Source of the DNA: Guillardia theta CCMP2712
Taxonomy: Eukaryota; Protista; Cryptophyta
Length of the DNA stretch: 64,000 nt
Direction: 5' to 3'
Assembly (NCBI RefSeq): GCF_000315625.1
Contig: NW_005434560.1
Span: 128,020-192,019, forward strand
Below, piece by piece: positions 6,924 through 48,573 of this stretch. Made by a program: the position numbers and the translations under genes. How positions within the stretch are numbered: position 1 is the stretch's first letter; every line of letters begins with the position of its first letter. Below the pieces are notes generated by a model. That model had not been told where the DNA came from. It made no database searches and worked only from the letters and a program-made list of their open reading frames with translations.

Positions 6924-8626
6924 ATAGCAAAGGTCAGCGAGCTCGACATCCCGCTGTACACGTCCGCGAACGTCGTCGCGTGGATAGGAACAGGGTTGAG
7001 ATAAGCAGGGAAATTCAGGTTGTGATTCGCTGCGTTTCCACAGAAGAATTTCTGCGGCTGGTTAAAGGTGCAGTGCGTCTTGTTCAGGCCCAGCAACACG
7101 TCGATGAACACGACGAGGGAGCCTGCGATGATCGCGAAGGCGAAGATTATGGCGTTGAAGTACACGACCCACCTGTAATTGGTGGTCGTGAAGTAATTAC
7201 AGAGAAGGATGGATGCCACGAATGGAAAGTTCAACAAATAAGCGAACCATGTCAAAAACTTCGTGGACTCCGCGGGGTTGAGCAGAATGATGTCGTAGAC
7301 AATCTGGTTGATCCACAGCAACAGAAACACGGCAAACACCAAGATCGTATCCATGCTGTAATTGATGGTGAGATTAGGTAGGTCTGGATCTTCCTGCATT
7401 AAACCAGGATTTTCATCTGATTCCTTTCCATCATCCACCAGGATCGCCCTGGGATTGCCATCCTGATAGGCATCCGGTGCAGTCAAACCAAACTGTGTCC
7501 GCATGAATCCAAACCTCGCGTTCTGTTTTGCGGCCATGTCCATCTCCTTCTGCACCTTGTTGTGCGTACGGATGGGATTAATCCTGCGGTAGTTCAGGAG
7601 CATCAGCCCCATGATGAGCAGCACCGATCGCACAAAGGCCGCCTGGAACGACCACTCCACGGCGTTGTTCACTGCGATGGCGTAGAGACTCAGGATCAAG
7701 GTGGGAAAGAGGAAGATTTGCGAGCTCAGGATCACGTTGATCACTCTGTAGTTCTCGTATGATTCATTGCTTTGCATATTCTTCCCAGGTGGAAGAAAAC
7801 TATTTGTCATCCGGATGCATGCAATAAGATTGATACCTTCGAACATGGCAACGTCCCCCTTCACTTGGTCCTTGCTGCATCTCCTCATAGTAATAATCTG
7901 CTGCACAATCGTGGCAGCGATGAGCACCAGCGCAAAGATGACGTTGTTGCGGGGGATGACCGCGTTGTCGACCTGGAAGATCGCGGAGAAGAGCACCACA
8001 ATGAGGATTAAAATGTGCCAGAAGGAATAGATCCAGATCTTGAACATTCCAAAGTATTGCAACAACCAGAAAATCTTGTTTGCCTCAGTGTAACCCGAAC
8101 AGTCCCAGAGGAGCAACAGCCAGCTCGCGTACATGAAGAGCACCACCATGACCATGAAGAAGGGATTCCAGGCCGCGGAGAAGGTGATGCTCACGGGGTT
8201 GTTGCGGTACAGCGCCACCTGCTTCGAGCGCTCGATGTTGCACAACCTGTGTTGCCTTTCACGTTCAGTCATAGAGAGACCAGCAGCGTATCCCGCATCC
8301 TGGCACAGGTAGTAGGTGTAGTTCCTGCGGTCCGCGAAGGTGGGTTCGTCGAAGCTCAGAGGCAGGGGAGCCATCGGCATGTACGACATCCCGCCCGGGG
8401 TGGTGGTCTGCAGCACCGAAGTCTCCCCGAAGAGGGTCACGTGCTGGCTGCCGATGGCACGGCCGTACACATTGCTGTACAGCGACTTGAAGATGGGGAA
8501 GCTGATCTTGCCCTCATTCTCACCGTAGACTTGGATGTGCCGAATGTAAGCACCGAAGAACAGTATGGAACAACAGAACGCCAGCAAGAATAGAGACATG
8601 AACAAGCCGCGCTCGGTCTGGGCCAT
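6920..8626 (-). CDS. Polytopic membrane protein (~9 TM)
   Basis: Multiple TM segments; TATAAA at ~8670 favours the MAQTER start. Confidence 0.75.
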   Translation of the reverse strand: MAQTERGLFMSLFLLAFCCSILFFGAYIRHIQVYGENEGKISFPIFKSLYSNVYGRAIGSQHVTLFGETSVLQTTTPGGMSYMPMAPLPLSFDEPTFADRRNYTYYLCQDAGYAAGLSMTERERQHRLCNIERSKQVALYRNNPVSITFSAAWNPFFMVMVVLFMYASWLLLLWDCSGYTEANKIFWLLQYFGMFKIWIYSFWHILILIVVLFSAIFQVDNAVIPRNNVIFALVLIAATIVQQIITMRRCSKDQVKGDVAMFEGINLIACIRMTNSFLPPGKNMQSNESYENYRVINVILSSQIFLFPTLILSLYAIAVNNAVEWSFQAAFVRSVLLIMGLMLLNYRRINPIRTHNKVQKEMDMAAKQNARFGFMRTQFGLTAPDAYQDGNPRAILVDDGKESDENPGLMQEDPDLPNLTINYSMDTILVFAVFLLLWINQIVYDIILLNPAESTKFLTWFAYLLNFPFVASILLCNYFTTTNYRWVVYFNAIIFAFAIIAGSLVVFIDVLLGLNKTHCTFNQPQKFFCGNAANHNLNFPAYLNPVPIHATTFADVYSGMSSSLTFAI

Positions 8627-8709
8627 GATGCACCGGCTGCCCTTTCCTACACATGCCCTGCCCTCGCCATTTATATGGTGGAGCGCCCGAAAAATTTCCA
8701 CGGTGCTAG

Positions 8710-9132
8710 CTACGTAGCCTTACCCGCACAGCGCAGGAGGTCAACATTCAGGAGGTCCAGGTCCAGAAGCCCCGCGCCCATCCCCCCGAATCCACCCGTG
8801 CAAATGCCCGGCACCAGCAAACGGGACGCCACCGCCACGCTCGAGGTGACGATGAAGAGCACCACAAAGAAGGCCAGCAGGAGGCTGTCCCGCTCCGGCA
8901 CGGAGAACACCACCGAGAAGCTCGTCGACGAGTGCGGGTTGTGGGTGCAGATCACGTCCACGTCGGGGAAGCGGTCCTTCACCCGGTCGTGCATCTCCCC
9001 GTTCCACTCCTCGTAGTCCGTCAGCATGCAGGTCGTCCCGCTCACCACCATGCATCTCCCCCCGTGCGCCTCCGTGTTGCACACCTCCCTGACGTGGGTG
9101 CAGATGCGGTCGATCTTGCGCGCCCCCTCCAT
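8710..9132 (-). CDS. Small protein with C-terminal TM
   Basis: 140 aa, GC3-rich, one TM. Confidence 0.6.
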   Translation of the reverse strand: MEGARKIDRICTHVREVCNTEAHGGRCMVVSGTTCMLTDYEEWNGEMHDRVKDRFPDVDVICTHNPHSSTSFSVVFSVPERDSLLLAFFVVLFIVTSSVAVASRLLVPGICTGGFGGMGAGLLDLDLLNVDLLRCAGKAT

Positions 9133-9178
9133 GTTTTCTATAAAACCCTTCTAGCTCGACAACGGGGAGGGAAGAAAT

Positions 9179-10525
9179 ATGGGCAACTACAACTCCAGCC
9201 ATGACCACATCAACGACAACCCAGACAACCCCATCCAGGACACTGCGGGGTGGAGAAACTCCGCGGGTGCCGTGGCTGCAACCACCGCAATAGAAAATGC
9301 AAACCACATCGCCATGGACCGCAACCTCCGCCAGCACGCGATCCGCCAGGCGGTGTATAGGGCCTTATACAAGGTGAGGTTCGAGCAGGTCACCCCACAG
9401 GAGGCTTTCTGGATCTACAAGTGGGTGAAGGCCCTGAACCTGGAATTGCAAGTCACGGAAGGCATCGCGGGCGCTTCCACTCTCTTGAGCTTATCGATCG
9501 TCATGAAACCCAACTTCGACGCCCTCTCGCGGCGCAACGAGGCGCTCAGCGTCGACTTCTGGAAGCAGTTCATCCAAACGGCCGTGAGGGATGCCAATAT
9601 GATCCCGGAAAACTTCTTTCGAAATGCAAACACCATGGAGGAAAATGCAATGAACAACCTCCGGAGCTTCAAGCGGCTTATCAACATCCTCGAGCAGAAC
9701 ATCCACACCCTCACCCCCGTGGCGTGGAACTCGCTCTCCGACGCCCTGCAGATCACCCGGCAGGTGTTCGTCGAGCGCGGGGTGGACCTTAACGATTTCA
9801 TCACGCGCAACGAGGACCAATCGACGGCAACCCCGAAATTCACCGAGAGAGAGCTGCTCACCTTCCTCTCCCGCCACCCAATCCTCCGCGAGAGCCTCTC
9901 CAAGGCCGCGGGCTCCATCCTCCAGTCCACCCTCAACCTCCGTGACGGGGCCTACTCCGGCATTCGCAAGCTCAACGCCAACGACGCTAGGATGATCGGC
10001 TACATCCTCTACCTCAAGAGCGAGGTCCGGAAGCTTGCAGACGAGATCAAGAACGTACTGACCGATGCACTCCTGAACCCGCACAAGTACGTCGAGTATT
10101 TCCTCGATGTCACCGATGCCGTGAGGGCGGACGCGTTCGACGAGTTCCTCGTATCGGACAGCAGGGCGGCGACCCGTAGAAGAGAAGCAGATAGGCCTGT
10201 CGCAGGAAGACGAGGAGGAGGAGGGGGCGGGGGAGGAGGAGGTGGTGGGGGAGGAGGAGGTGGTGGGGGAGGAGGAGGTGGTGGGGGAGGAGGAGGAGGC
10301 GGAGGAGGCGGAGGAGGAGGAGGAGGACGACGAGATGCTGCAGACGCAGCTCGAGTTGTGGGAAGAAGAGAGGCAGAGGCTAGTTCTATGCCACTGACAT
10401 CCAACCTCGATGGCGCACAGGACGACCCACCCCAGCGCGTCCCCACCACCGGGGGCTCGAACCCCCGCAAGTACATACGGATCAACGGGGAGATGGTTGC
10501 ACTCGATTCATTCAGGCAAGAATAA
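9179..10525 (+). CDS. Putative N-myristoylated protein with a 38-Gly tract
   Basis: MGNYNSS fits MGxxxS; TATAAAA at ~9139; poly-Gly at 10214-10327. Confidence 0.75.
   Translation: MGNYNSSHDHINDNPDNPIQDTAGWRNSAGAVAATTAIENANHIAMDRNLRQHAIRQAVYRALYKVRFEQVTPQEAFWIYKWVKALNLELQVTEGIAGASTLLSLSIVMKPNFDALSRRNEALSVDFWKQFIQTAVRDANMIPENFFRNANTMEENAMNNLRSFKRLINILEQNIHTLTPVAWNSLSDALQITRQVFVERGVDLNDFITRNEDQSTATPKFTERELLTFLSRHPILRESLSKAAGSILQSTLNLRDGAYSGIRKLNANDARMIGYILYLKSEVRKLADEIKNVLTDALLNPHKYVEYFLDVTDAVRADAFDEFLVSDSRAATRRREADRPVAGRRGGGGGGGGGGGGGGGGGGGGGGGGGGGGGGGGGGGGGGRRDAADAARVVGRREAEASSMPLTSNLDGAQDDPPQRVPTTGGSNPRKYIRINGEMVALDSFRQE
10214..10327 (+). repeat. GGN trinucleotide repeat (38 Gly codons), G-quadruplex prone
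   Basis: Direct reading of GGA/GGT/GGG/GGC run. Confidence 0.95.
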
Positions 10526-19307: not shown

Positions 19308-22300
19308 TTACTGGGGTGCATCGATCAGGTTGGATGACTTTAGGATGAGCTCGTAGGATTCCTTGTTGTAATCACTCTGTCTTGTGTGGTTCAGAAGCTT
19401 ATTGACGGTGGGTGTAAAGGGCCATGGTGCATTGATCCCATCAGGCTTCCATTTGATCATCAGTTCGTTCCATGCCTTCTTCTTCTCCTGCAATCCCTTG
19501 CGGATCTGCTTCCGCATGTCCCGCTCCCGGAAGCTCCCATACATGTCGATGAGGTCGTAGTTGCCATCCGTGGGTGGCTTCCGGCCGATTTCGTAATTGT
19601 CTGGGTTGTAGGTGATGGCGGTGTAGGCCGCGTTGATGAGGTTGGAGCTGTAGAAATTCTGGAATTGCACGACAATGTCCTCTAAACTATTCCCAGGGAG
19701 ATTCTCGATGCAGTACCACGGGAAGTACATATCGGCGGATAGGTGGTCAAAGAAAGACACAGGGGTCCACAGCTCGGTGTGCCTCAGCCGGTGGCTCACG
19801 ATGGTGTACCAAGTGTCGGAGGTCCTTTGCATATAGTAGCTTGATTTTTTGTTTTTGGCCTTTGCAGTTTCGTTTGTTTTCAGCGATTTGATGACATAGG
19901 CCATGTTCAGCGTGAACTTGTGCAGGGCGCGGATGTATCGGAACACCCAGCGGTGCAGCACTCCGTCCCAGTTGGACTCTTCGATACTGACCTCTGGGGT
20001 GTTGTCGCCGAATAGCTCTGTCTTGTGATTGTTCTTCATATTCTCGATGGACTTCTTCAAGATTTCAGCGAAGACCTTGCCGCTCACAACGATGGTTGCA
20101 CTCCCTGAACTGTATTTGACAACCTGCATGTTCCGCGCGACCCTGCTCCGCGTGACGTATAGCTGATTGTATGCTAACTTGGGTAGGACTTGCTTCAAGC
20201 GGTACTTCACGACGCTGTCGCGGTCGAGGTGGATGTGCAGGATACGGGTGAAGTCTTCCTTAGGGAGGGTATGAAGAATTCCTATGATGTGTACCTTCCA
20301 GGGTGTGGCGCTGCTGACCGACGTGGTGGAGGAGGGGTGGCTGTGGGCGGGGCTTGGAGATCGGGGGCGCTTGTTGGAAGCTTCAGGATCTTCATATAGA
20401 AGCCCTCCGCGATTGTGACCCCCTCTGGTATGGGGTGGGTTCCATACTTTTTCGTGGTCAATCTCTTGATCGCGGGACGGCTTGGGAGAGTTAGAAGCTT
20501 CCTCCTTTCTCACAAATCCGGGGAGTACACCCGGAGAGTGCTTTCTGACGTTGGAAGCTTTAGAATCTTCATCTGTGTTCTTCCCTCCAATCCCTCTTTG
20601 ATCGTGGGCCTTTCTGACACCGGGGTCGTTATCCATCTGCGTATGGTGTCTGTTATCGGGTTCCATGTCAGGCTCTTCCGGTTCCATGTCAGGCTCACTT
20701 TCGTTGTCTTTCTCGCTTGCATTGTCTTCCATCCCATCTCCATCTGCACCAAGTTTGGCGTGCATGGGAGTGGGAGAGGAAGGGGAATATGTGGGAGAAG
20801 GAGGGGAATATGTGGGAGAAGGAGGGGAATATGTGGGAGAAGGAGGGGAATATGTGGGAGAAGGAGGGGAATATGTGGGAGAGTGAGGAGATAAATCAAT
20901 AGACTGAATCCTTCCCTTCTGATACGCCAGTTCCATGTTGTACAGAGCATTCGTGTATAAACTGAGCATTGCCCTCAAATTAATAAATGAATCGACATCA
21001 TTCATTTTCAGTTGACTGGCATTGATCTCTATCGTTGACATCTGTAAGAGAATGCCATTTGTTATATCCTTCAGGTATGCGTATTTTTTAAGTTCAGAAT
21101 CAATATCCTTGTAAATTCGCCATGTTTCCTTCAACTGAGAAACGAGTGAATTCAGAATATTGTTGGGTGGTACGATTGCTGTCCCTAATGCTGTCTTGTA
21201 TGTAAATTGGTAATCCATGGTAAATATTTCATTGAGTTTATCGATAATCTTCTTCTTGGTATCTTCCCAATGATTTTTCATCACAGTTTCCATATGATCT
21301 GTTGAGACTTGTTGCTTTTTAGCAACATCTTTGATGATGCCAAGTGAATTTTCCCGTAACGTTCCGTCCAGCCTTGGGTACTTAGTGATTCCTGACATCG
21401 GTGTCAGCTTGTCGATCACTTCCGTCAATGGGGCGTTGGTGAGGGTGACGTAGAAGTCATCCCAGGAGCGCATGGACCATGTCAGCATGGGCTTGTCGTT
21501 CTCCGCCGCGCCAGGCAGCCTGGCTATCTCCAGGTCGGCGGCTTTGTCGTCCTCACCGGCCAGGATGACCTGGATCATGTGCTCGAAGTTCGTCACGATG
21601 TTCATGAGGTTGGTGGTATCCATGTTTGTCGTTTGTACGGTCATGCGCGTGAAGGGGTTCAGGAATGTCTGGTTGTGGAGGATGAAGGAAAGTATCGCCT
21701 CCTGCTGTAGTGTTATCCTTAGTTTCTTGCGGTAGTCGTAGTAGATACCCTTGATGATCTCGACGAATGAGTTGATGACGTAGGGCATGAGGCGGACGAT
21801 TTTGAGCGGATCGTCTTCCTTGATCAGCCTTCTTGTATTGATGTACAGGCTGGTTGTCAGCTTCTTCACCTTGGGGTTGAGGTGCAGGGAACATTCCTTG
21901 AATTGTTTCGCGCTGTGCTGGTAGTTGACGCTCTGGATGACGAGGATCTTAAGCACGCGCTGCATGACGACGGATATGACCATCTTGCAGCCCATGATGT
22001 ACTTCACGATGGCTTGCTTGGCTGTTTCGTTCTGTTTACCCACCGCGAAATTGTACAGTTCAATCAGCGTGCTTTTGGGACTTGTGTCCCTGTACCGTGT
22101 GGTGTTGGATACTTCCGTGATTTTCGACATAAACTTTTTCCGGTTTTCAATGACGCGATCGATGCCATGTTTCTCTATATTATGCAGGTTAGTGGTGGAC
22201 TGGTCCAGGGATATCTTGAGTTGAAGTAACAACCCATTCAGTCTGGACACAGCACTCCTGTATCTCATAATTTCACTGTTGTACCTCCGTCTTGGCTGCA

Positions 22301-25300
22301 AGTCCTTGTTTTTTCTGTTCCTTCTTCTTTTTGCGTTGTTAGTGACTGCAACAGGCATGCCAATAAACATGGCGGAGACACCCTTTTGATCGTCACACTC
22401 GTCTTCGCTGTCGCTGTCGCTCTCCCCCATCTCCGCGGCGTAGCCCCACGCATCGCCGAGGAGGATACCGTTCGGGTCTTCAATATCCCTGTGGATATCG
22501 CGGGAGAAGATGCATTCGAGCCTTGGTTTTTTGCTGGACCGGCTGGAATCCTGGTCCGTCCTTTTGTTCTTGTCCGACATCAATGGGATTGTGCGTTGAA
22601 AGGGATTTTTCTGCTGTATTGGGTTGTGTCTATGCTGTATAATTTTCTCTATGAGTTTCGTTTCCTTGTTGAGCTCCTGCTTGAGCTTTTCCCTGTCGTT
22701 CTCATTGATCTCATTTGAGCTCAATGCGCTCCAATCTTTCTTGTTCAATGCACTAACAACCTTCGTCATCAATTTTAATTTTTCCAGTACATTTCTGTGA
22801 TTTTTTTGGAGTTCCTGCTTGGAAGATTGGTATGATTTTATGTTTTCCTTGATTATGTTTTCGTTGATAACCCTGTTATCCATCTGGGTGAATGTTTCAA
22901 TGTTCCTGTCGATCCATTTTCCGAATTGGTACAGAACCATCAACTTCGTAAATTCATATATGGTCTGTATGGTGGATTTTATGTCGTCTATGTACCCAGG
23001 TGCCCTTACAAGTACGTTCATTATGTCGTTGTTCTGTTCTGCATTAACATTGAATTCGTGTACACTGAGCCATGTTTTGACAGTGGGTAGCTCGAGGTGG
23101 AGGTAGTCCTTTAGCTGTTCCATCTGCTTGAACGTGAAGGAATCCGGCTCGACCGTTGTCTTAATGTCATTCATCATGTATTCGTTGGGTTCCAATCGGT
23201 ATTCACCATAGCCTCTCTGATATTCCAAAGGAACTTCTATCGATGATTGACCCAGCAGAGCATCGATCATACCCAGCATGTAGCGTTGGAAGACTTTCTT
23301 GGAGTTGGCGTCCTGATCGTTGTTCTTGATGCTGGGCATGAGGATGACATTGAGCGCCTTGATGGTGTTTATCCTGGCTGCTAGAATGAGGGGCAATGCC
23401 TCTTTGAAGAGTTTAACAGCCTCGCTGTTGCGTATGATCATACCGTAGTCATCGGTAGGTTTTGCATTGTTAACCTTGGTATTCCAGACATCTTTGTGTG
23501 CGTCTAGTTGCATCTGTTGTTTCATGATTCTTTTCACGTTGATTGCGTTGAGCAGGTTCGAACCGAAGCGCTTCATGTGCCCTGGCTGTACATCCGCCAT
23601 GTAAGGCTTCATGTCATACAGCTCCTGTTTGATCTCCCTTATGTTGACTCGATATGGATCGATGTCGAGGGATGATGAAGTCATCGTGGCCTTCATCCAC
23701 ATGTTATAGACCTTGTGGGTGTATCTCTTGCAAAATCGTAGCCTTTCCACGTTGCCCGCGTAGGCTCCGTGGACTTGTTTGAGGATCTTCTTCACCCGGC
23801 GGTCGTTCCTGGATTGGATGTCAAGTTTGATATCTTTGATGTCTGTAGTGTCGGCGTACTTTTGCTTTCCCTTTATCATCGCGGCGAACATGTATTGTGG
23901 TGTTATGTTGAAATCTTCTTTGTTGTTTTTCTGGAATTCCCCTTGATTCCAGGGTTCTTTGCTCTTCATGCGTTGTATATCTCTCTGTATCTCTTTGTCT
24001 GCATTCGTGTCCAGATCTTTGATGTATTGGTTGTATGTGGATTGGTGCATGTTCAGGGCTTGTTTGAGCTCGGCTTCATCCTTTGGAATAGCGCCGATAG
24101 GATTTCCGCGGACGATGTCCTCGAGTATGCTGTAGTCTATCTTGTCATTGAATCCTTCTACAAAGACATGGTCTATCTTCGCCCATTGGAGCATATACCG
24201 GATAGACGTTATGACCTTGATGGTTGCAATATGTTCTGAGTTGTCTTCTATGAATTGTTTGAAATCGTCGCTTGCATCCATGCTCTTGTCTATCTCATCC
24301 ATTTCATCTAAGGTGTTTTTCAATACATCTATCTCATGTCTGTTTTTTTCATAATCATGCCTGAGATACATCCGCTTATAATAAATGTTGTGAGAGTTTA
24401 TCTGCTCTTCCGTTAAGATTTCACGTGCAATATGATGTAGATCACCCTGTGGTTTTTCCCATATAGGGAGTTTAAAATGTTTCATGACACTTTCCTTTCG
24501 TTCTTCGTCCTTGTACTCGGATTTCATCAATTTGATGAATTCGTCTCGACCATTCTTGTTGGCAAATAAGATAAGTGATACGTATCTCATGACATTGTAT
24601 GTATCCTTTAGTTCATTACGTGCCGTATTGATGTTTTTTTGGTATTCATCTCGGTCGGTCACCTTCCCTTTTTCTAGATTATTGACATGGCGTAGTAGGT
24701 ATGACATTCTTCTGATGACAAAATTTAGTTTTCGTGTCATACTCAGAAATTCACTGTAATATATGTTTTTGAATTTTCCTCCAAGAGGTTTGGTATAACG
24801 ACGTTTCAGAGTATCACATTTTTCCATGAGTTTGTCGATTTCATGGTTGATTTGAAAGCTTTTGAGTGATGTCATCGCATCCTTGATATAATTCGGTAAT
24901 ATCTGGTAATCCTTGAGCCTCTTGATGAATATCGGTGTGTTATCCTTCTTTTTCTTCTCGGCCACGTCCTTCCAATTGCCGGCCGCCCCCTCCCCCGGCG
25001 CACCGATCTCGGGGCTGAATTCATGCCCACTCTCTGACATCTCCTCGTGATCGCTGCCTGGCTCATCGTCGCTGCTGTAGTCATACCTGGGTGTGACATG
25101 CATGGAGCCATCACCGAGGTCATCGTTGTAGAACTCCCTCTCGTCGTCGTAGTATGCCTCGTCCCACAGCCCGTCGTCCTGGATCCCCGCGGCGCGGAGG
25201 ACGCTGGGGGGGAAGCGGAGGACGCCGTCGTCGCGGTCTGCGAGCTCGCTCCACTCGGCGAGCTGCTCGAGGGACTCGTGGAGGAGGTCCATGGTCTCCT

Positions 25301-25454
25301 GCTCGATCTCTTCTTTGGACGGTGTCGGCGTTTCATGGGAATGGCAGTCGTTGTTGGGAATAGAAGCCGAGTGGAACACCACCTGGACTCCATCGTAATC
25401 GATGGCTTCTTCGGGGTGAGATCCAGACGGCAGGTGGTTTACTGCGCCGTGCAT
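19308..25454 (-). CDS. 2048-aa helical protein with RNA Pol II CTD-like heptads
   Basis: Uninterrupted ORF; GTATAAAAG at ~25479-25487; (YSPPSPT)x4 plus YSPSSPT; no RNA polymerase catalytic motifs seen. Confidence 0.85.
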   Translation of the reverse strand: MHGAVNHLPSGSHPEEAIDYDGVQVVFHSASIPNNDCHSHETPTPSKEEIEQETMDLLHESLEQLAEWSELADRDDGVLRFPPSVLRAAGIQDDGLWDEAYYDDEREFYNDDLGDGSMHVTPRYDYSSDDEPGSDHEEMSESGHEFSPEIGAPGEGAAGNWKDVAEKKKKDNTPIFIKRLKDYQILPNYIKDAMTSLKSFQINHEIDKLMEKCDTLKRRYTKPLGGKFKNIYYSEFLSMTRKLNFVIRRMSYLLRHVNNLEKGKVTDRDEYQKNINTARNELKDTYNVMRYVSLILFANKNGRDEFIKLMKSEYKDEERKESVMKHFKLPIWEKPQGDLHHIAREILTEEQINSHNIYYKRMYLRHDYEKNRHEIDVLKNTLDEMDEIDKSMDASDDFKQFIEDNSEHIATIKVITSIRYMLQWAKIDHVFVEGFNDKIDYSILEDIVRGNPIGAIPKDEAELKQALNMHQSTYNQYIKDLDTNADKEIQRDIQRMKSKEPWNQGEFQKNNKEDFNITPQYMFAAMIKGKQKYADTTDIKDIKLDIQSRNDRRVKKILKQVHGAYAGNVERLRFCKRYTHKVYNMWMKATMTSSSLDIDPYRVNIREIKQELYDMKPYMADVQPGHMKRFGSNLLNAINVKRIMKQQMQLDAHKDVWNTKVNNAKPTDDYGMIIRNSEAVKLFKEALPLILAARINTIKALNVILMPSIKNNDQDANSKKVFQRYMLGMIDALLGQSSIEVPLEYQRGYGEYRLEPNEYMMNDIKTTVEPDSFTFKQMEQLKDYLHLELPTVKTWLSVHEFNVNAEQNNDIMNVLVRAPGYIDDIKSTIQTIYEFTKLMVLYQFGKWIDRNIETFTQMDNRVINENIIKENIKSYQSSKQELQKNHRNVLEKLKLMTKVVSALNKKDWSALSSNEINENDREKLKQELNKETKLIEKIIQHRHNPIQQKNPFQRTIPLMSDKNKRTDQDSSRSSKKPRLECIFSRDIHRDIEDPNGILLGDAWGYAAEMGESDSDSEDECDDQKGVSAMFIGMPVAVTNNAKRRRNRKNKDLQPRRRYNSEIMRYRSAVSRLNGLLLQLKISLDQSTTNLHNIEKHGIDRVIENRKKFMSKITEVSNTTRYRDTSPKSTLIELYNFAVGKQNETAKQAIVKYIMGCKMVISVVMQRVLKILVIQSVNYQHSAKQFKECSLHLNPKVKKLTTSLYINTRRLIKEDDPLKIVRLMPYVINSFVEIIKGIYYDYRKKLRITLQQEAILSFILHNQTFLNPFTRMTVQTTNMDTTNLMNIVTNFEHMIQVILAGEDDKAADLEIARLPGAAENDKPMLTWSMRSWDDFYVTLTNAPLTEVIDKLTPMSGITKYPRLDGTLRENSLGIIKDVAKKQQVSTDHMETVMKNHWEDTKKKIIDKLNEIFTMDYQFTYKTALGTAIVPPNNILNSLVSQLKETWRIYKDIDSELKKYAYLKDITNGILLQMSTIEINASQLKMNDVDSFINLRAMLSLYTNALYNMELAYQKGRIQSIDLSPHSPTYSPPSPTYSPPSPTYSPPSPTYSPPSPTYSPSSPTPMHAKLGADGDGMEDNASEKDNESEPDMEPEEPDMEPDNRHHTQMDNDPGVRKAHDQRGIGGKNTDEDSKASNVRKHSPGVLPGFVRKEEASNSPKPSRDQEIDHEKVWNPPHTRGGHNRGGLLYEDPEASNKRPRSPSPAHSHPSSTTSVSSATPWKVHIIGILHTLPKEDFTRILHIHLDRDSVVKYRLKQVLPKLAYNQLYVTRSRVARNMQVVKYSSGSATIVVSGKVFAEILKKSIENMKNNHKTELFGDNTPEVSIEESNWDGVLHRWVFRYIRALHKFTLNMAYVIKSLKTNETAKAKNKKSSYYMQRTSDTWYTIVSHRLRHTELWTPVSFFDHLSADMYFPWYCIENLPGNSLEDIVVQFQNFYSSNLINAAYTAITYNPDNYEIGRKPPTDGNYDLIDMYGSFRERDMRKQIRKGLQEKKKAWNELMIKWKPDGINAPWPFTPTVNKLLNHTRQSDYNKESYELILKSSNLIDAPQ
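20769..20894 (-). repeat. 21-bp tandem repeat encoding CTD-like heptads (6 units)
   Basis: TGTGGGAGAAGGAGGGGAATA units on the + strand. Confidence 0.95.
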
Positions 25455-25596
25455 CCTGCCGTACGGGCGTCGCGGTCTCTTTTATACGGGGGAACCGTGC
25501 GGATAACCGTGTATTTAAGTTCGTGTGGCGGAGGGACAGATACGCTGGTCTGGCTGGATTCCTTGAAATTCATTGCTTGCCAGATACACGGGCGGG

Positions 25597-26412
25597 ATGT
25601 CGCTGTCGAAGTTTCAAGAACAGTCAAACTATGCTGTTGCATTCCACTTATGCAGGAACATGGCTGATGTGAGGAAGGACATGAAGAAAATTCAAGGGTT
25701 TAATTATCAGGCTCCCTATGAATTCATGAATTATCATCTCAAATATGCAATTCCCTCGGATAAGTACAAGTGTGCCATGCAGTATGGCAATTACCTGATG
25801 TTGAAATCCGCTGAGTTGCTGATGGGTTTGAAGGATAAGTTCCAGAAACCCCTCGATGGTAACAGAAAAGTAGGGATAGATGAAAAACACAACTTCATTT
25901 TTTCGGATCCTTGTACGGTCATACAAGCCATGAAGTTGCATAATGGACACTACTACGAAAACTTTTCTCTCCCCAAGGATCTCATGGAGGACCTAGAGAA
26001 TCCAAGCCTGGAGCCCCCTTTCCTTGTGGTGCATAATTATGAGGTGCACTGGTTCCCTGCCTCCAAGATCACCCCGGGCAAGAATGGGATGGGGTGGTAC
26101 GTCGACTCCGTCGTTCGCACCGTCGACGATCAAATGAGGCCGGTTCAGTTCTTCGCGGCATACTCCAGTGAGGAGAGGAATGAGTACAGCCGCGTCCTGT
26201 ACGACAACTGCGAATTCGGGCCCTCGAACTGCAATATCGACATTCCGTTCAAGAAGTTCGAGTACAGCCAGGAGAGCCTCGACGCCATGAAGCAGTTTCC
26301 ACACCCTCCGATGTTGAACGCGAACGAGTTGCCAGATTCGCCGTTGGAGGCAAGCTCGGAGGAGGAGTGGAAGCCCCCTGCGAAGGTGTCCAGGACGAGC
26401 GCGAGGAAGTAG
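25597..26412 (+). CDS. Hypothetical protein
   Basis: ORF of ~271 aa; TATTTAA at 25512-25518. Confidence 0.65.
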   Translation: MSLSKFQEQSNYAVAFHLCRNMADVRKDMKKIQGFNYQAPYEFMNYHLKYAIPSDKYKCAMQYGNYLMLKSAELLMGLKDKFQKPLDGNRKVGIDEKHNFIFSDPCTVIQAMKLHNGHYYENFSLPKDLMEDLENPSLEPPFLVVHNYEVHWFPASKITPGKNGMGWYVDSVVRTVDDQMRPVQFFAAYSSEERNEYSRVLYDNCEFGPSNCNIDIPFKKFEYSQESLDAMKQFPHPPMLNANELPDSPLEASSEEEWKPPAKVSRTSARK

Positions 26413-26480
26413 ATGCCAGGAGGGTAGGCGTCCCGTGTGTGTGTTTGGTACTAAATCACGTTTAATTTACTTCATATGTA

Positions 26481-27068
26481 CTACTCCTCCGAGACGCTCT
26501 CCATGAGCCATGCGACCTCTGTCTTGGTTCTTTCGGCGTAGGAGAGGAAATGGTCATCCTTGTCGATGTTGTACTTGCGGATGTAGTGGAAGTACTTGTC
26601 GGAATCTCGGTCATAGTAGCCGTCGGCCACGAAAACGACCCCGTGATTGATGAACAGGGGTGCGTGCTCGTAGTGGGTCTGGCGAACATAATAGGGGTAC
26701 CAATGCACCGCCTTGACCGCCATGCTGTGGAAACACTCGATCACGTCTTCAGTGGGGACGGTGATCCTGTCCACGGCCTTTGCCTTCTCGAGCGCGCCTT
26801 CGAGCTGCTTGATGGCAGAGGCGATAGTGTCCTTCTTCTCTTTGGAGGTCGTGGTGGTGAGTTTTTCCTTCAACTCGGCGAGCTTCGGGGGTGCGAAGGT
26901 CTCGAACCTCTCGTTGCAGATGGTGACGGTGCGGATAGTGACAGTATCCAATTCTTCATCCCTGACTTTGAAGGATAGCGTCACCTTGGCCGGGTGGGCT
27001 TCAAACCTCGGGCGTTTGCGTGCGCGCTCTTCAGCGTTGCTTTGCAACCTGTAGATCTCGGTGAACAT
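26481..27068 (-). CDS. Hypothetical nuclear protein (RKRPR NLS-like)
   Basis: TATTTAAA at ~27100-27107 upstream of MFTEIY. Confidence 0.65.
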   Translation of the reverse strand: MFTEIYRLQSNAEERARKRPRFEAHPAKVTLSFKVRDEELDTVTIRTVTICNERFETFAPPKLAELKEKLTTTTSKEKKDTIASAIKQLEGALEKAKAVDRITVPTEDVIECFHSMAVKAVHWYPYYVRQTHYEHAPLFINHGVVFVADGYYDRDSDKYFHYIRKYNIDKDDHFLSYAERTKTEVAWLMESVSEE

Positions 27069-27243
27069 GCCACGCGTGCCCTGTGCTTTTTGGTGTAGCT
27101 TTAAATAAAACATCGAGGGGGGAATAAAAAAACACAAAAAAAAACTTCCATGACGCCGAAATCCATCTCTCCGCGCTTTCGAACGTATTAAACCCGGCGA
27201 TGGCGCCGCCCTCCTCGGACTGGTTACTGACGCTTTCCCGCAG

Positions 27244-27801
27244 ATTGGGACGACCAAGGGCACCGGCGGGGATGTGCTGATCCTGGAGGAGGCGGCATAC
27301 TGCGACGAAGGTTTCTTCTACGAAACCGTCGCACCCATCCTTTCCATCGGCAACACGTCGCTGCTGTGTATATCTACCTTGACATCGGAGATCAATTTCT
27401 ACACCAGGCTGATAAAGATGCGGGACCCGGAGACGGGCAGGCCACTCTTCGCCGTCAGGTGCATCGAGCTCGCCTGCCAGGCATGCAAGGAAGACGGCAA
27501 GGCGCACGAGTGTGTGCACCTCCTGCATCTCGTCCCGCAGTGGCAGAGTGGCGAGAGGCACAGGAGGCTGAAGGTGATGATGCAGGATCGCCCGGATCTG
27601 ATACAATCCGAGCTGGCGGGGCTGGCGTTCGACTCCCTGCAGCAGGCCTTCCGCCCCAAAGACGTGGAGATCATGTTCGAGCAGGTCGCCCCTCCCCTCT
27701 CCAACGGACAGACCGTCTTCGTCGTCGTGGACCCGGCGGCGGGAGGGCCGCAGAGCGACTACGCCGTCGTGAGCATCGTGAGGAGCAAGGGGCTTGTGAC
27801 G
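27244..27801 (+). CDS. Terminase large subunit exon (Walker B, coupling motif, start of nuclease domain)
   Basis: IGTTKGTGGDVLILEEAAY (Walker B), CISTL, VVVDPAAGG. Preceded by branch point ACTGAC (27226-31) and CAG acceptor (27241-43); ends at GTAACT donor, phase 0. Confidence 0.85.
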
Positions 27802-28247
27802 GTAACTCTCTGTGTGTTTGCACCCTTCTTCCCCTCTAGCTGTATTGGTAGACCTCCCGCAGCTCCCGCTCGAAGTCGACGCTGAGGCGGAGCTCGTCGC
27901 GGAGGAAGCGGGGCACGACGCGGGAGCCGAGCTCGCGGAAGAGCACGGGGGCCTTGTGGGGGCAGAGGCCCTTGAGCGTGACCCCGGTGGGTTCGTGGAG
28001 GAAGGAGCGGCAGACCGCCTCTTTTAGCCCCATGTCCACGTTGAGCAAGAGGAAGAAGACGCACCTCGCGCTGTGCGGCGACCGCCTCGCGATCTCGTAG
28101 AGCCGGACCGCCTCCGTGTCCCGCAGCTCCGCGGCGATCCTCTCCACCGCCCCCTTGCAGAACTCGAGCGTGGTCCTCATGTCGTCTGTGTAGAGGATGT
28201 GGAAGAGGACGTCCCTGTTTCTGAGCTCTGACATCTACCCTTCGCAG
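27802..28247 (+). other. Spliceosomal intron (446 nt) of terminase containing an antisense gene
   Basis: GTAACT...CTGAC(28228-32)...TTCGCAG; removal keeps the frame. Confidence 0.8.
27836..28234 (-). CDS. Intron-nested antisense gene (132 aa), unknown function
   Basis: Fills the intron almost exactly; strong GC3 codon bias. Confidence 0.65.
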   Translation of the reverse strand: MSELRNRDVLFHILYTDDMRTTLEFCKGAVERIAAELRDTEAVRLYEIARRSPHSARCVFFLLLNVDMGLKEAVCRSFLHEPTGVTLKGLCPHKAPVLFRELGSRVVPRFLRDELRLSVDFERELREVYQYS

Positions 28248-28281
28248 ATCGTCGGGATGGACGTGCTGTCGGGATGCAAAG
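28248..28281 (+). CDS. Terminase micro-exon (IVGMDVLSGCK+G)
   Basis: 34 nt between CAG acceptor and GTACTT donor. Confidence 0.75.
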
Positions 28282-28327
28282 GTACTTCTTTTTTTTTTAA
28301 TCTTTCCTGCATTGACTCCCTTGGAAG
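28282..28327 (+). other. 46-nt spliceosomal intron of terminase
   Basis: GTACTT, T-run, TTGAC branch, AAG; phase 1 removal restores the frame (G|AG = Glu). Confidence 0.8.
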
Positions 28328-28812
28328 AGCCCGACAAGCAGTTCGACCTGCTCGGGGAGCACATGGAGAGGCTGCGGGGGATGAACACCGCGCTCTACGC
28401 CTCGGAGTTCGTCGTCATGGTGGAGCGGAACCTGGGCTTCGAGGCGGAGTACCACCAGCGGCACTTCAACGGCATGCCCCATGTCCGCTTCCGCGTCGAC
28501 CACAAGGCCCAGAGGTACGGCGTGCTGACGACACTCGAGATAAAGCACGCCATGTGCACCATGCTCAACACCATGCTGCGGGAGCGGAGGGTGCACCTCT
28601 GGGGCGAGTTCGTCAGCCGCGACCCCAGGGGCATGAAGCGCCGGCTCCGCGAGCAGCTCGAGATCTACTCCTACCAGTTCAAGGGCGCCGCCAGCGTCTT
28701 CAACAAGGACCAGCTCGCGCTCAGCGGGAAGGTCGGCGGGATGAAGGACGACGTCTGCATCGCCCTGCAGCTCGCCTGCTACTACAGCTCCAACCCGGAG
28801 TTCTACGTGTAG
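28328..28812 (+). CDS. Terminase last exon (RNase H-like nuclease domain)
   Basis: VMVERNLG and SGKVGGMKDDVCIAL motifs typical of herpes/phage terminase nucleases. Confidence 0.85.
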
Positions 28813-31896: not shown

Positions 31897-33384
31897 ATGG
31901 GACGCACCAAACAAGATCAACGGAGGGAGACCGGTCAAAGGGCTCCAGTCGCGAGGCTCTCAACTCAGAGAGCCAGAGAAGATGCACCCTTTACGGCGGG
32001 TGTAAGACAGCCAGGCAGCACTGCTACCAAGCAGCGCGGTGTTGTCGCATCGGGCGTGAATGTGCCCAATTATCTGCAGTTGATCTGTGCCCTTTCTGCT
32101 TTTCAAAGTGAGGAAGATCTAAAACAAATGCAGTACTTTGTCGACCTTTCTAAGGAAGATGAAGCTTGGTACAACAAGCTTACCTCAGAAAACAGGCAAA
32201 TATTTGATGATCTCTGGGTTAGGCTCGATTCCGTGTCTGTACCTCAGACAGAACAGCAAACGACTGAAGGTGCAGCTTCTATCTTGCAGAGCATGCGCAA
32301 TGACGAGAATCAAGACACGCAACAGGAGTTCCAGGAATCCGATCCAACCAATGTCGTGAGCGGCACCCTGCAACCGGACGTCACGGTGCTCCTCGAATCC
32401 CAACCCGAGAGCAATGAAATGGATTCGCAGCAAGAGCCTGTGCCGGCCCCTCCTGCCGTCGATGGAAATGGTGATCCAATCGATGAAACGGGCACTGGAT
32501 CGCAGGTTCCTGGGACGTCGCCGACCGATGAGCCGACATCCGTTTCCTCTACCATCGATGAGAACAATCAAGAAATCGATGGAACGGGTACTGAATCGCA
32601 GGTTCCTGGGACGTCGCCGACCGTTGAGCCGACATCCGTTCCTGTCGTCGATATGAACGAGAACAGAGATGAAGGCTCTTCCAACGCTACCGGTTCAAGC
32701 AAACTGCTAGAGAAGGCATTTCAGCGAGAGAGCAGCTCGGATGAATCCGATGATCCCGATGCACCTGTGATCACCAACTCTCGCAAGAACGTCGGTGGCA
32801 AGCAACTCCCACAGATGCAACCACAGATGTCGAACCCACAGCCGCAACCAGCAACGTTTGTGAACCCAGCTTTGGAAGAGTATCACTTCGTTATTCCCGA
32901 GCAACCCGACAATGGTCCGGAACAAACAGGCGTTCCATCTACTGCCACTGATTCGTCTGTTTCTAAAAAACCAATCAGAACCAAGCAGACTGCCAAGAAG
33001 AGCACTGGCGGCAAAGCACCACGCAAAGGTCGCGCCAAAAAGGATTCTAGGAGGTCCACCGTACACGACGGCGGAGTCAAAAAGCCCCACCGCTTCCGCC
33101 CCGGCACCGTGGCCCTCCGCGAGATCCGCAGGTACCAGAAGAGTACGGAGCTCCTTATCAGGAAGATCCCTTTCCAGCGGCTCGTCAGGGAGGTAACGCA
33201 AGACCTGGGATTCCGGGGCATCCGATATAAAGCAGATGCCATCATGGCGTTGCAGGAGGCTTCGGAGGCCTACCTGGTTGGACTCTTTGAAGACACCAAC
33301 CTCTGTGCCATCCATGCCAAGCGTGTCACGATCATGCCCAAGGACATCCAGCTGGCCCGGAGGATCCGTGGGGAGCGTACTTAG
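31897..33384 (+). CDS. H3: Histone H3 with a long extension and a second, N-terminal H3-like tail (495 aa)
   Basis: C-terminal [17 protein letters not shown]...[28 protein letters not shown]...[11 protein letters not shown]; N-terminal MGRTKQ... collinear with the H3 tail; TATTTAAA at 31853. Confidence 0.95.
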
Positions 33385-39772: not shown

Positions 39773-41998
39773 ATGCAATCCACGCTGCCAACCCCCCCGC
39801 CCCCCCAGGCCGCACCGTTCCCAACCCCCTTATCGCCCCAAGCCGCACTTGCAGCGCGCCGCGTCCTATGCTTCCTCCGCGGACCCGCCTACTCCCGCTC
39901 CATCCGCTCTCTCTCCTCCCGCATCAAGCGCTACGGCGTGCTCGAGCGCTGGGAGCCATCTGCGGACTTCAAGGTCATGACGAAGAAATCGCAGCGCAAG
40001 TGGCTCATCCGCGACATCCGGAGGTTTGTCACAACGGCGATCTACATGATCACGCGCAACGTCAATCGGAGCGGGACCGCCATCGCCGAGGAGGAGAATG
40101 CGCCGGCCTTCAACGTCCGCATCCTCCTCGCCTCGCTCCTCATTGTCAACCGCCCGAATAGCTGCTTCGAGGCCATCGGCGAGCTCGAGAGGAGGGTGCA
40201 AGCTTCGTCCTCTCCCATCTACGATTCCCTGTGCGCCTTGGTTGACTGTGCCCAGGGCCAGACTCTGAACTCCATGAATTGGACGGAGCACCGCGACTTC
40301 CTCCGCCGCCTGAAGACCTACCTTCAAGACTTCCAAGCGTGGAAGGTTCCCGACGAGCACAAGCTTTCCGAGCGCATCAAGCACGCCCTTCTCGCCCTGT
40401 ACCGCGCGGAGTCACACCTCACTGAGGAGAGCCAGGGCTACGAGAGCATGAAGCAGGAGTTTCGGGCGCAGAAGGCCAAGCTCAGGGCCAAGATGGTGCA
40501 GATCGCGGGGACCCAAGGCCTTGCGAACGTGGACGAGCTGCTGAGGAAGGAGCGGATCTACCCCGAGGACGACGAGGAGGCTGGCGCGAGTGAGGAGGCC
40601 GGTGCGAGTGATCCGTCCGCCGCCAGCAGCCTCCCCCCCTCGACCAACGCGTCCGGTCTGTCGTCTCTCCCGGGTAGGATGACAAACGAGCAGCTGGCAC
40701 ACGAGCTCCTACTCGATCCGAACTTCAAGCTCGACACAGAGGGAGCCGGCTACATCGACAACGCAGTCCTCTCTAACGTGCGGGAGAGCTTCAAGATCGC
40801 CTTCTGGAACAGCCTGGTCGACGACCTAAGGATCTCACCCCCCTGCTACACACGTGTGATCAGAGTGCTGGGTGAGGTGAGGGACGGGCTCATAGATCTG
40901 GCACCAAGGTTCAGAGCTTATCTGCGGGAGAAGATCGACACCAACCACATCACGCAACTGGTCGAAATGGGATCGATTGACTGGCCATCCTGCATCGCCA
41001 TACTCGACGGTGTCATCTCCTCCGCGATCGAGATCCAGGAGCCGAAGCGCAAGGAGGAGACGGTGTCGGAGTGGGCGGAGAGGAAGGCGAAGATGCAGTC
41101 CTGCGAGCCGGAGGAGCAGCCGGAGGCCTTCTGCGCCAACCTCGAGTACACACTGGCGCGCGTCAATGCCATGCGGGTCGATGCGGCCAACGCGCGCCTC
41201 CGGAACATCGCCCACGTCATCCAGAATCACGGCGTCGAGTATGAGCAAAGTCACATGTCGAAGAAGATCAGGCAGAACCCGGAGTACCTTCGGCGCACAC
41301 CCGAATGGATCCTTCAGTCGATCACCAAGCTCTCCAAGGAGAATGGCATGATCATCCCCTCGCTCCTCCGCGGCGACGGCGCGACGTTCCAGACGGTCCA
41401 CGCAGCGGCAATCCTCGGCCTCGTCACCGCGGATGTGCCCATCACGGATGAAAACTGCCCGGAGTTGCTCCTCCTCGACGTCGCCCGCCTGAAGAGGCTG
41501 CAGAGGTCTTTCCGATTCGACCTCTTCGGCTGCGGCTGCCTGCGGATGGCCTCCCAGAAGATTCTCTCCAAGGACAGGGGCACGTCCGCCATGGGACTCA
41601 TCCGGCATCTCGTCACGGCTCTCAATGCGTTCGACGCCTCCGAGATGGACACTGAAGGTGCAAAGAAGGTGTTCAAGGACTCGTTCAAGTCAGAGCTCTC
41701 CGACGAGGAGAAGGGGATCATCACCGCTACCTTCTACCCCTACAGCGAAGTGGCGCTCGGCCAACTCCTCGAAGTTCCCGCCCCCACCACCGCTGCCCTC
41801 TTCCCGTTCGTCGAGGAGCACTGGTACAACGTCGCCGTGAAGGTCTCCGAGAGTCGACCTGCCTATCTCAACACCTGGTCCCTGAATGAGCGCATCACCC
41901 GCAACGCCAAGGCCCTGCGCAAGATCATCGATGTGAACCGCAAGGTCCACACCGCGCTCTACAACAGGATCATCGCGGAGCAGGCGGCTAGGGTTTAG
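39773..41998 (+). CDS. T-complex protein 11 (TCP11/SOK1) family protein
   Basis: NEQLAHELLLDPNF, AFW, MRVDAAN, GVEYE, PELLLLD motifs. Confidence 0.85.
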   Translation: MQSTLPTPPPPQAAPFPTPLSPQAALAARRVLCFLRGPAYSRSIRSLSSRIKRYGVLERWEPSADFKVMTKKSQRKWLIRDIRRFVTTAIYMITRNVNRSGTAIAEEENAPAFNVRILLASLLIVNRPNSCFEAIGELERRVQASSSPIYDSLCALVDCAQGQTLNSMNWTEHRDFLRRLKTYLQDFQAWKVPDEHKLSERIKHALLALYRAESHLTEESQGYESMKQEFRAQKAKLRAKMVQIAGTQGLANVDELLRKERIYPEDDEEAGASEEAGASDPSAASSLPPSTNASGLSSLPGRMTNEQLAHELLLDPNFKLDTEGAGYIDNAVLSNVRESFKIAFWNSLVDDLRISPPCYTRVIRVLGEVRDGLIDLAPRFRAYLREKIDTNHITQLVEMGSIDWPSCIAILDGVISSAIEIQEPKRKEETVSEWAERKAKMQSCEPEEQPEAFCANLEYTLARVNAMRVDAANARLRNIAHVIQNHGVEYEQSHMSKKIRQNPEYLRRTPEWILQSITKLSKENGMIIPSLLRGDGATFQTVHAAAILGLVTADVPITDENCPELLLLDVARLKRLQRSFRFDLFGCGCLRMASQKILSKDRGTSAMGLIRHLVTALNAFDASEMDTEGAKKVFKDSFKSELSDEEKGIITATFYPYSEVALGQLLEVPAPTTAALFPFVEEHWYNVAVKVSESRPAYLNTWSLNERITRNAKALRKIIDVNRKVHTALYNRIIAEQAARV

Positions 41999-43690: not shown

Positions 43691-44326
43691 TCACTCGATG
43701 TACCGCTTCACCACCGGCCACAGCCTCCTCCACCCGATCTCGATGTCCTCGACGCACTTACCCCCCGTGATGACGACCTTGCCGCTCTCGAAGCAGAGGA
43801 GGACGACGGGGGAGTTGTCCGGGCGGAAGATGAGGCCCGGGAAGAGGGACTTCTGGAAGGTGCACTTGGAGCACTGCTCGTTGTACATTCTTTCCAGATT
43901 CAAGGTGCGATTTCCCTGGAGGTCGATGATGGCGTTGCCGACGATGTTCTGGACGACGATGTCCTCGACGTGGAAGTCCACCCCGATGATGTAGGCGCGG
44001 AGCATCTCGACGATCTTGAGCGAGGCGTGCAGGCACTTGTACCAGCTCTGGGAGCCGGTCAGGACCAGCTTCCCGGAGCTGAAGAGCAGCACCGTGCAGG
44101 TGGGGTTGTCGATGCGGATCGTGATGGCGGCGAACTTGTGCTTGTCGTAGAAGCTGTTGGGCAGCACGGAGGCGATGTAGTTCAGGTTGAGCGGCACCAC
44201 GCTCGACCGGATCTTGGTCGTGCTGACGATGTTGTGGATGAAGGCCGGGGGCGCGTCGCTCTCACCCTCGCCCGGGAGGAAGGAGAGCTCGTCGATGGAG
44301 AGGGCGGAGTAGAGGCGCTTCTTCAT
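43691..44326 (-). CDS. TBP: TATA-binding protein
   Basis: Two TBP repeats: NIVST...LLFSSGKLVLTG and QNIVG...FPGLIFR...LLCFESGKVVITG. Confidence 0.95.
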   Translation of the reverse strand: MKKRLYSALSIDELSFLPGEGESDAPPAFIHNIVSTTKIRSSVVPLNLNYIASVLPNSFYDKHKFAAITIRIDNPTCTVLLFSSGKLVLTGSQSWYKCLHASLKIVEMLRAYIIGVDFHVEDIVVQNIVGNAIIDLQGNRTLNLERMYNEQCSKCTFQKSLFPGLIFRPDNSPVVLLCFESGKVVITGGKCVEDIEIGWRRLWPVVKRYIE

Positions 44327-48398: not shown

Positions 48399-48573
48399 GT
48401 CAATCCAACCCCAAACTCGATCGAATGCTCCAAGGACGGTTAAATAAAGGGAGGGAGGCAGACTCTTCGTTTCGGAGCACGCGGAAAACACAGCTTGATT
48501 TATACATAGGTGAGAGGATTCCATATTGTTGTATTAAAGCATGGGTATACTATGGAATAATCAAACACTATCC

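Follow-up and report, generated by a model that had tools for sequence, protein, structure and literature searches.

An Antisense Gene Inside a Spliceosomal Intron of a Probable Mirusvirus Terminase Piece Fits the MING-1 Kind of Nested Gene

Results

Organisation of the Terminase Locus and Its Two Introns

The window, as the whole analysed stretch of 64,000 nucleotides is called here, carries on its forward strand what is very probably a piece of a large terminase gene, interrupted by two introns, the first of which holds a gene on the opposite strand. The features of the locus are as follows.

27227-31 and 27242-43, plus strand: branch-point-like CTGAC and acceptor AG before exon A (from the sequence)
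27244..27801, plus strand: terminase exon A, 186 aa (from relatives and motif reading)
27802..28247, plus strand: intron 1, 446 nt, GT-AG, phase 0 (from the sequence; intron-less relatives are colinear)
27836..28234, minus strand: nested 132-aa gene, MING-1-like, stop included (from homologues, dN/dS, profile and model)
28228..28232, plus strand: intron 1 branch-point motif CTGAC, overlapping the nested ATG (28232-34) by base 28232
28248..28281, plus strand: 34-nt micro-exon, 11 codons plus one base, coding for a conserved strand of the nuclease
28282..28327, plus strand: intron 2, 46 nt, GT-AG, with a T10 run at 28289-28298 and TTGAC at 28312-16
28328..28812, plus strand: terminase exon C, containing the remaining nuclease including its Glu and second Asp motifs; stop codon 28810-12

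Exon A comprises a Walker B-like stretch, a Cys/His cluster, the first strands of the nuclease and its first Asp motif. Intron 1 opens with GT at 27802-03 and closes with AG at 28246-47, at a codon boundary behind a conserved Thr; intron 2 extends from GT at 28282-83 to AG at 28326-27. The reading frames fit this arrangement, with exon A ending in phase 0 and the last base of the micro-exon combining with two bases of exon C to form a Glu codon, and the terminase frame meets a stop if intron 2 is left in. The CDS of the spliced terminase piece is 1077 nt long.

The nested gene was found to fill 399 of the 446 nt of intron 1, its ATG lying 13 nt before the acceptor and its stop 34 nt from the donor; in effect, intron 1 is a gene with splice signals bolted on. 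Read on the minus strand, 28289-28300, which holds the T10 run of intron 2, is TTAAAAAAAAAA; the T run lies 55-66 nt upstream of the nested ATG. The sequence-only reading of this locus had described a 446-nt GT-AG intron almost filled by a 132-aa minus-strand ORF with coding-type GC3 bias, followed by a 34-nt micro-exon and a 46-nt intron whose T run lies about 60 nt upstream of the nested ATG, all within a terminase gene. These features could be read directly and held throughout, the nested ORF having a GC3 of 0.95, and the micro-exon with its following intron was conserved in 22 of 23 loci, as detailed below.

An Rfam search at E up to 1 returned only two chance-level matches to unrelated families and no group I/II signature, so that a self-splicing group I or II intron is without support from Rfam.

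Two further observations concern the surroundings of exon A. For its conserved Cys/His cluster (~27460-27520, plus strand), the top PDB match was the copper-fist of a yeast metallothionein activator, which was sub-threshold (E 0.57 and 0.12); the cluster may be a metal-binding insert. Between the start of the minus-strand gene 26481-27113 and the acceptor of exon A lies an A-rich block (27100-27144) with AATAAA-like words and runs of A7 and A9, which could be the promoter of the terminase pre-mRNA, a signal of the neighbouring genes, or both.

Identity of the Terminase Piece

The spliced terminase model was searched exon by exon. Pfam and PHROGs were blank for each exon and for the natural intron-less ORF of locus L011, single-sequence PDB searches were likewise blank, and tblastn against phage records gave no match. 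A profile of exon A relatives gave a weak match (E 1.6), placed on the Walker B stretch, to 4zni, a large terminase of a phage. When natural intron-less versions were aligned starting from the 363-aa ORF of L011 (alignment A7), the only non-trivial PDB match of the profile was to the UL15 nuclease (4iox/6m5t), again weak (E 1.6); it consisted of two colinear pieces situated exactly on both Asp motifs. An AlphaFold model of exon A alone with 42 relatives was poor (pLDDT 52) and was left out of the fold search. Based on these sub-threshold, motif-precise matches, on motif reading and on the published description of a C-terminal terminase piece (PMC12768974), 27244-28812 (plus strand) is very probably the C-terminal piece of a large terminase, beginning shortly ahead of Walker B and running through the whole nuclease.

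No Walker A motif was present in the long open frames of the window, which fits the trans-splicing near Walker B reported for the terminase of intron-rich mirusvirus orders (PMC12768974). Trans-splicing probably links the piece to an ATPase part encoded beyond the window, and the acceptor before exon A is probably a trans-splice acceptor or that of a very long intron. At the start of the terminase piece of L011 (~4535-4680, minus strand), the first ~20 residues of exon A, that is, the Walker B stretch, were matched twice in tandem.

The Nested Gene and Its Family

Equal-length homologues of the nested protein were found at 96-29% identity. A word search gave four clusters of 131-132 aa with 98, 69, 50 and 50% identity, all metagenomic, and a profile search of 1.84 billion representatives yielded 98 clusters of the family at E up to 0.001, mostly of 120-180 aa and matching end to end. 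GC3 in fetched copies was 0.85-0.95. The dN/dS ratio was ~0.10 between the window and L001, 0.26 between the window and L003, and 0.16 between L004 and L005. AlphaFold, supplied with 64 aligned relatives, returned a confident model (pLDDT 93.9, pTM 0.88), an all-alpha helical bundle with one hairpin. From the equal-length homologues, the low dN/dS, the 98 clusters and the confident model, we conclude that the nested gene is a real protein-coding gene under purifying selection; the conservation that the sequence-only reading had named as a check is present. High-GC DNA does yield many long spurious ORFs, the overlapping ORFs of the window being examples, and the 132 codons might in principle be a chance open frame in GC-rich intron DNA; this idea is refuted by the same four lines of evidence and by the family members at the loci of relatives, and we give it practically no credence.

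Within the family, one Tyr near the C-terminus is invariant, and one Asp and one Lys are kept in more than 90% of the rows. Each locus carries a single family copy, and wherever the context of a relative could be read, a terminase piece was next to it. Divergence is faster in the nested protein than in the terminase, with 69% versus 91% identity for L003 and 41% versus 82% for L007. Scanning IMG/VR with the close alignment revealed no relative.

No relatives were found by structure or by domain searches. Foldseek comparison of the model gave nothing in the PDB (best E 0.64, TM at most 0.34) or in BFVD (best E 0.78), and the protein was blank in Pfam, PHROGs and PDB sequences. It has no nuclease motif and no HNH, GIY-YIG, VSR or PD-(D/E)XK domain. 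The sequence-only reading had asked whether structure prediction and Foldseek would reveal a nuclease or a packaging factor; the confident all-alpha model, with no match in PDB or BFVD and no nuclease motif, backed neither. A tyrosine-recombinase-like reading, suggested by the invariant C-terminal Tyr and conserved Arg/Lys, and an LRR-like reading were both rejected, as neither fold was among the Foldseek matches and the model is helical. For MING-1, a role as RNA chaperone or in targeting has been proposed (PMC12768974). The chaperone role is not favoured by the charge of the family: the median pI is 6.25, close to neutrality, and only 14% of the members exceed 8.

One protein, P0011 (1503 aa), gave 16 separate matches to positions 52-98 of the nested profile and contains a HeH/LEM domain; it is a repeat protein, and its match to the profile may be compositional.

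Comparison Across Relatives

A metagenome scan returned 80 loci, and lineages were counted at 90% identity of the nested protein. The donor GT of intron 1 was at the identical codon boundary in 22 loci, corresponding to 19 lineages, with intron lengths of 395-691 nt; the insertion site lies between the first Asp motif and the following nuclease strand. In all loci with a gap of at least 498 nt between exons A and C (31/31), a family member lies within the gap, in antisense orientation throughout. Six truncated loci conform to this pattern, giving 37 nested or probably nested loci in all.

The splice model of both introns rests on intron-less relatives that are colinear over both predicted junctions. 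In L011 and L013, exon A, micro-exon and exon C form one ORF, and in L007 the micro-exon runs directly into exon C, with no intron 2. All of 13 further second introns, placed from the protein match, start with GT and end with AG.

CTGAC was found 13-17 nt before the acceptor of intron 1 in all eight lineages read, and a (C/T)TGAC or ATGAC motif also occurs in second introns and ahead of exon A. The sequence-only reading had pointed to the overlap of the nested ATG with this branch point. The overlap of one base is real in the window, and an ATG abutting the branch point (CTGACAT, invariant) is shared by L001, L003, L004 and L005; the feature is nevertheless clade-specific, since in L007 and L008 the ATG lies deeper inside the intron, with CTGAC between ATG and AG. 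L010 has CTGACAT as well, yet carries a second CTGAC nearer to the acceptor. For L083, L088, L093 and L071, the aligned nested start lies at most 11 nt from the first base of the micro-exon, which implies that the start codon must overlap the acceptor or the micro-exon.

The micro-exon has the same length of 34 nt in 22 loci. Together with a GT-AG intron 2 of 45-136 nt, it accompanies intron 1 in 22 of the 23 intron-1 loci examined, L007 being the exception; in about eight more nested loci, the search pattern for the micro-exon gave no candidate. Intron 2 was found in none of the 38 loci without intron 1 (36 loci of the scan plus L011 and L013). The co-occurrence of both introns with the ORF, as proposed for checking by the sequence-only reading, was borne out in 22 of 23 loci; L007 keeps the gene without intron 2.

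In two loci, intron 1 accommodates a second gene (L004, 762-1442, plus strand; L005, 614-1339, plus strand) of 226 or 241 aa, which has the same sense as the nested gene and is fast-evolving: the two versions are only 49% identical, although the nested proteins of L004 and L005 are nearly alike. This second intron gene had no relative in the window and no Pfam match.

Family members were also found outside the terminase gene. In L011 and L013, one stands tail to tail directly behind the stop of the uninterrupted terminase. Altogether, 20 of the 38 intron-less loci have a free-standing member no more than 3 kb away from the terminase piece, the tail-to-tail copies often being at a distance of 15-129 nt. 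The 36 intron-less loci of the scan were distributed as follows.

11 of 36 loci: family member downstream, antisense, 53-2502 nt after the stop
7 of 36 loci: family member upstream, sense
18 of 36 loci: family member absent from the flanks

A tree of the exon A protein, a quick neighbour-joining tree of one exon and accordingly rough, requires at least four switches between the state with intron and gene and the state without intron, which is no more than a hint. Judged from this tree and the alignments, the locus may have gone into or out of the nested state several times, the codon boundary always being the same.

Identity of the Genome

The window is tightly packed with long ORFs of high GC3, and there are almost no Pfam matches among the ~40 ORFs scanned. 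Apart from blanks, the only matches were the following.

4782-5279, plus strand: RNase H-like 3'-5' exonuclease (Pfam)
31897-33384, plus strand: protein with a full histone H3-like fold at its C-terminal end (PF00125, E 1e-42)
39773-41998, plus strand: Tcp11-domain protein (Pfam)
43691-44326, minus strand: TATA-binding protein (TBP), two repeats, virus-encoded (Pfam)
47688-48524, minus strand: DcpS_C/HIT protein (Pfam)

The histone H3-like protein comprises 495 aa, of which the last ~130 residues are the H3 fold, preceded by an H3-tail-like N-terminus and a long acidic Pro/Ser-rich spacer.

TBP and histones are among the core functions of Mirusviricota, and a Pfam annotation rate of 13-14% is given for the intron-rich mirusvirus orders (PMC12768974). 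Exon A has more than 1000 relatives, nearly all of them metagenomic; the named ones are only hypothetical proteins of Guillardia theta CCMP2712 (86% identity) and Baffinella frigidus, whose assemblies are both listed with mirusvirus signals (PMC10827195). The TBP, the histone H3-like gene, the low Pfam rate and the relatives in metagenomes and cryptophyte assemblies all fit a mirusvirus, a large DNA virus of single-celled algae. The best overall explanation, and a likely one, is that the window comes from a mirusvirus of a cryptophyte-associated kind and that its intron 1 is of the MING-1 kind.

The sequence-only reading had drawn a parallel to the herpes genes UL16 and UL17, which lie antisense inside the UL15 intron. 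Taken literally, this would make the window an animal herpesvirus whose terminase is spliced as in UL15 and whose nested genes are of the UL16/UL17 type. Such an origin would share with the window the general likeness of a spliced terminase with an antisense intron gene, and the weak profile contact with the UL15 nuclease motifs points the same way; the TBP and histone genes of the window, relatives from cryptophyte assemblies and water metagenomes, an intron of 46 nt, and a nested protein with no named herpesvirus match among PDB sequences, Foldseek PDB or BFVD render it extremely improbable. None of the fetched related metagenome loci bore the name of an animal virus. The parallel survives as an analogy only.

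Two stretches near the terminase piece stand out. A 2048-aa ORF (19308-25454, minus strand), blank in Pfam, is located in a region with 45-49% GC and a strong AT skew, compared to ~57% GC for the genome. The terminase piece is adjoined by a variable island (25490-27226), whose counterpart in L001 (reverse) is at ~8580-9401; the island has no nucleotide match to L001, whereas both flanks match at 76-89%, and its gene 26481-27113 shares only 31% protein identity with the positional counterpart in L001.

Expression of the Nested Gene

In the proposed mode of expression, both introns would be removed from the terminase pre-mRNA by the host spliceosome, and the nested gene would have a minus-strand transcript of its own. 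Since 13 nt of intron 1 precede the nested ATG and 34 nt follow its stop codon, promoter and 3' signals should lie outside the intron. The promoter would be situated beyond the acceptor, possibly in the T-rich intron 2, with the micro-exon lying antisense in the 5' leader; the 3' end would be beyond exon A, making the nested mRNA antisense to the terminase exons on either side.

AATAAA or ATTAAA is located within 70 nt behind the stop in 15 of 39 window genes, compared to 0.46 per kb per strand overall, and this placement suggests nuclear-type 3' end formation. Genes without either hexamer often have the next gene on the same strand behind them. Within 800 nt past the nested stop, neither hexamer was found, and the first poly(A)-like signal further along this strand is the following.

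26461..26466, minus strand: ATTAAA, 15 nt past the stop of gene 26481-27113

Given this spacing, it is plausible that the nested gene shares its 3' end with gene 26481-27113, its transcript running antisense through all of exon A.

It had been suggested in the sequence-only reading that intron 2 may exist to house the promoter of the nested gene, in the form of its minus-strand A run, which would make intron 2, micro-exon and intron 1 one unit. In favour of this are the presence of intron 2 in 22 of 23 loci with intron 1 and in none of the 38 without it, a T run of at least 7 located 54-95 nt from the ATG in the window, L001, L003, L004, L005, L008 and others, the position of 29 of the 36 window A/T runs of at least 7 outside the ORF list, and the TBP encoded by the virus itself. 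However, L007 retains the nested gene with neither intron 2 nor an A run, the T run is missing from ~9 of 22 second introns (present in ~13), and T exceeds A in all second introns, as in any pyrimidine-rich intron. Further, the mean base composition upstream of 39 genes has no A-rich peak, and the co-occurrence of the introns may reflect plain common descent. We therefore regard a promoter-housing purpose of intron 2 as possible but doubtful. A genome-wide rule equating A runs with promoters was rejected, as the runs occur in both orientations and base composition is level upstream of genes.

Discussion

Membership in the MING-1 Kind

MING-1 has been described as a set of 271 intron-harboured genes of one uncharacterised family, found in terminase genes only, where they invariably occupy a single site of the nuclease-coding part, and confined to two orders and one further family, that is, three lineages of the phylum (PMC12768974, Nat Microbiol, November 2025). 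The terminase concerned is a C-terminal piece of ~1.0-1.25 kb starting around Walker B (PMC12768974). Supplement 9 of that paper labels MING-1 as MNGF-1, with 271 rows, all in the terminase gene (PMC12768974). Among the MNGF-1 rows consulted, the nested gene is always on the opposite strand and encodes 107-268 aa, within introns of ~380-870 nt and a terminase CDS of ~1.0-1.25 kb; one example is a 131-aa gene within a 435-nt intron (PMC12768974). The values of the window (446-nt intron, 132 aa, antisense, 1077-nt CDS) are inside these ranges, and intron 1 of the window fits squarely into the MING-1 kind, by anatomy and numbers rather than by comparison of sequences or models.

Function and Origin

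Gene-carrying spliceosomal introns are rare, and with MING-1 a recently discovered virus phylum offers one that still awaits explanation. Our preferred, still tentative reading, to which we grant a little less than an even chance, takes the intron 1 cassette for a gene that is mobile now or once was. Its removal by splicing would make it tolerable, and it would either occupy the one terminase site or stand free beside the terminase piece. We lean towards it because of the patchy, site-exact distribution, the fast divergence and the existence of both intron-borne and free-standing forms, which recall phage homing genes. Against it, the nested protein is a small all-alpha fold with no catalytic motif, its purifying selection would equally suit an ordinary viral function, and the tree revealing the state changes is a quick neighbour-joining tree of one exon. 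The selection and the single copy per locus lend themselves to the reading that the protein has an ordinary terminase-linked function, as packaging accessory or expression factor, and that its position in the intron is a matter of compaction, so that linkage to the locus would not mean mobility. It would also account for the members that lie within 3 kb of the terminase piece at 20 of 38 loci lacking the intron, many of them tail to tail and 15-129 nt away; yet 18 of the 36 intron-less metagenome loci have no member in the flanks, the position of the family member has switched several times, and there is no structural likeness to terminase subunits in PDB or BFVD. Since MING-1 occurs in three lineages of the phylum only (PMC12768974), it is no core packaging part, and we consider such a function unlikely, if worth keeping in view.

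Where the strand is concerned, the family is uniform when nested: it is antisense in 37 of 37 nested or probably nested loci and on the opposite strand in each of the MNGF-1 supplement rows consulted (PMC12768974). Transcription of the nested gene over acceptor, branch point and micro-exon might thereby control the splicing or timing of the terminase, the protein being secondary, and an ATG abutting the branch point, or, in some lineages, a start that must overlap the acceptor or the micro-exon, would suit such regulation. The clear selection on the nested protein and its confident fold argue against a secondary role, as do the seven free-standing copies in sense orientation upstream of the terminase piece, which leaves antisense regulation improbable as the main purpose.

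In a bolder reading, MING-1 would be no intron gene as such but a small gene that moves between a free-standing place by the terminase piece and one exact site inside it. In the inside state, its promoter would be in intron 2, its leader antisense to the micro-exon and its coding region in intron 1, with the start codon fused to the branch point and the whole unit interleaved with the terminase exons. Taken as a whole, this two-place scheme is speculative, and we think it unlikely. If true, it would mean that both introns arose to fit one antisense gene, and the re-used codon boundary would point to an unknown site-specific insertion mechanism that employs a new protein fold. Handles on origin and function are provided by the free-standing members, by the repeated change of state at one codon boundary and by the micro-exon and intron 2 as companions.

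Comparison with Known Systems

The UL15 intron of herpesviruses is a few kilobases long and holds the ordinary virion genes UL16 and UL17 in antisense orientation. Common to both systems are a spliced large terminase, the same virus realm and antisense protein genes in an intron. In contrast, the intron of the window measures 446 nt, is practically one small gene, interrupts the nuclease part and belongs to a virus of a protist host; its nested protein has no detectable likeness to UL16 or UL17 by PDB sequence, Foldseek PDB or BFVD.

In T-even phages, homing endonuclease genes are intron-borne or free-standing. The likeness lies in one family that is found inside an intron of its target gene or free-standing beside it and that is patchy among close relatives. 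The differences are that the introns are self-splicing in the phages and spliceosomal here, and that the family of the window has no known nuclease activity or motif and is of putative mobility.

Shintrons are mirusvirus spliceosomal introns carrying homing endonuclease genes (PMC12768974). They have in common with intron 1 that they are gene-carrying spliceosomal introns in virion-module genes with specificity for the target gene, and in the supplement rows consulted their nested gene is on the opposite strand, too (PMC12768974). The nested protein of the window is all-alpha and has no HNH, GIY-YIG, VSR or PD-(D/E)XK domain; intron 1 was rejected as a shintron since the endonuclease domain is absent.

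The closest known system is MING-1 itself. Shared with it are a GT-AG spliceosomal intron at one fixed site in the nuclease region of the terminase, an antisense gene that almost fills the intron and has neither known relatives nor a nuclease motif, and a terminase piece of ~1.0-1.25 kb beginning near Walker B; no feature of the window contradicts membership. The text of the MING-1 paper (PMC12768974) does not include the 34-nt micro-exon, the second intron, the contact between CTGAC and the ATG, introns with two genes, or free-standing family members beside intron-less terminase pieces. The arrangement itself is thus already known (MING-1, 2025), and what the present analysis adds are the comparative points from the relatives.
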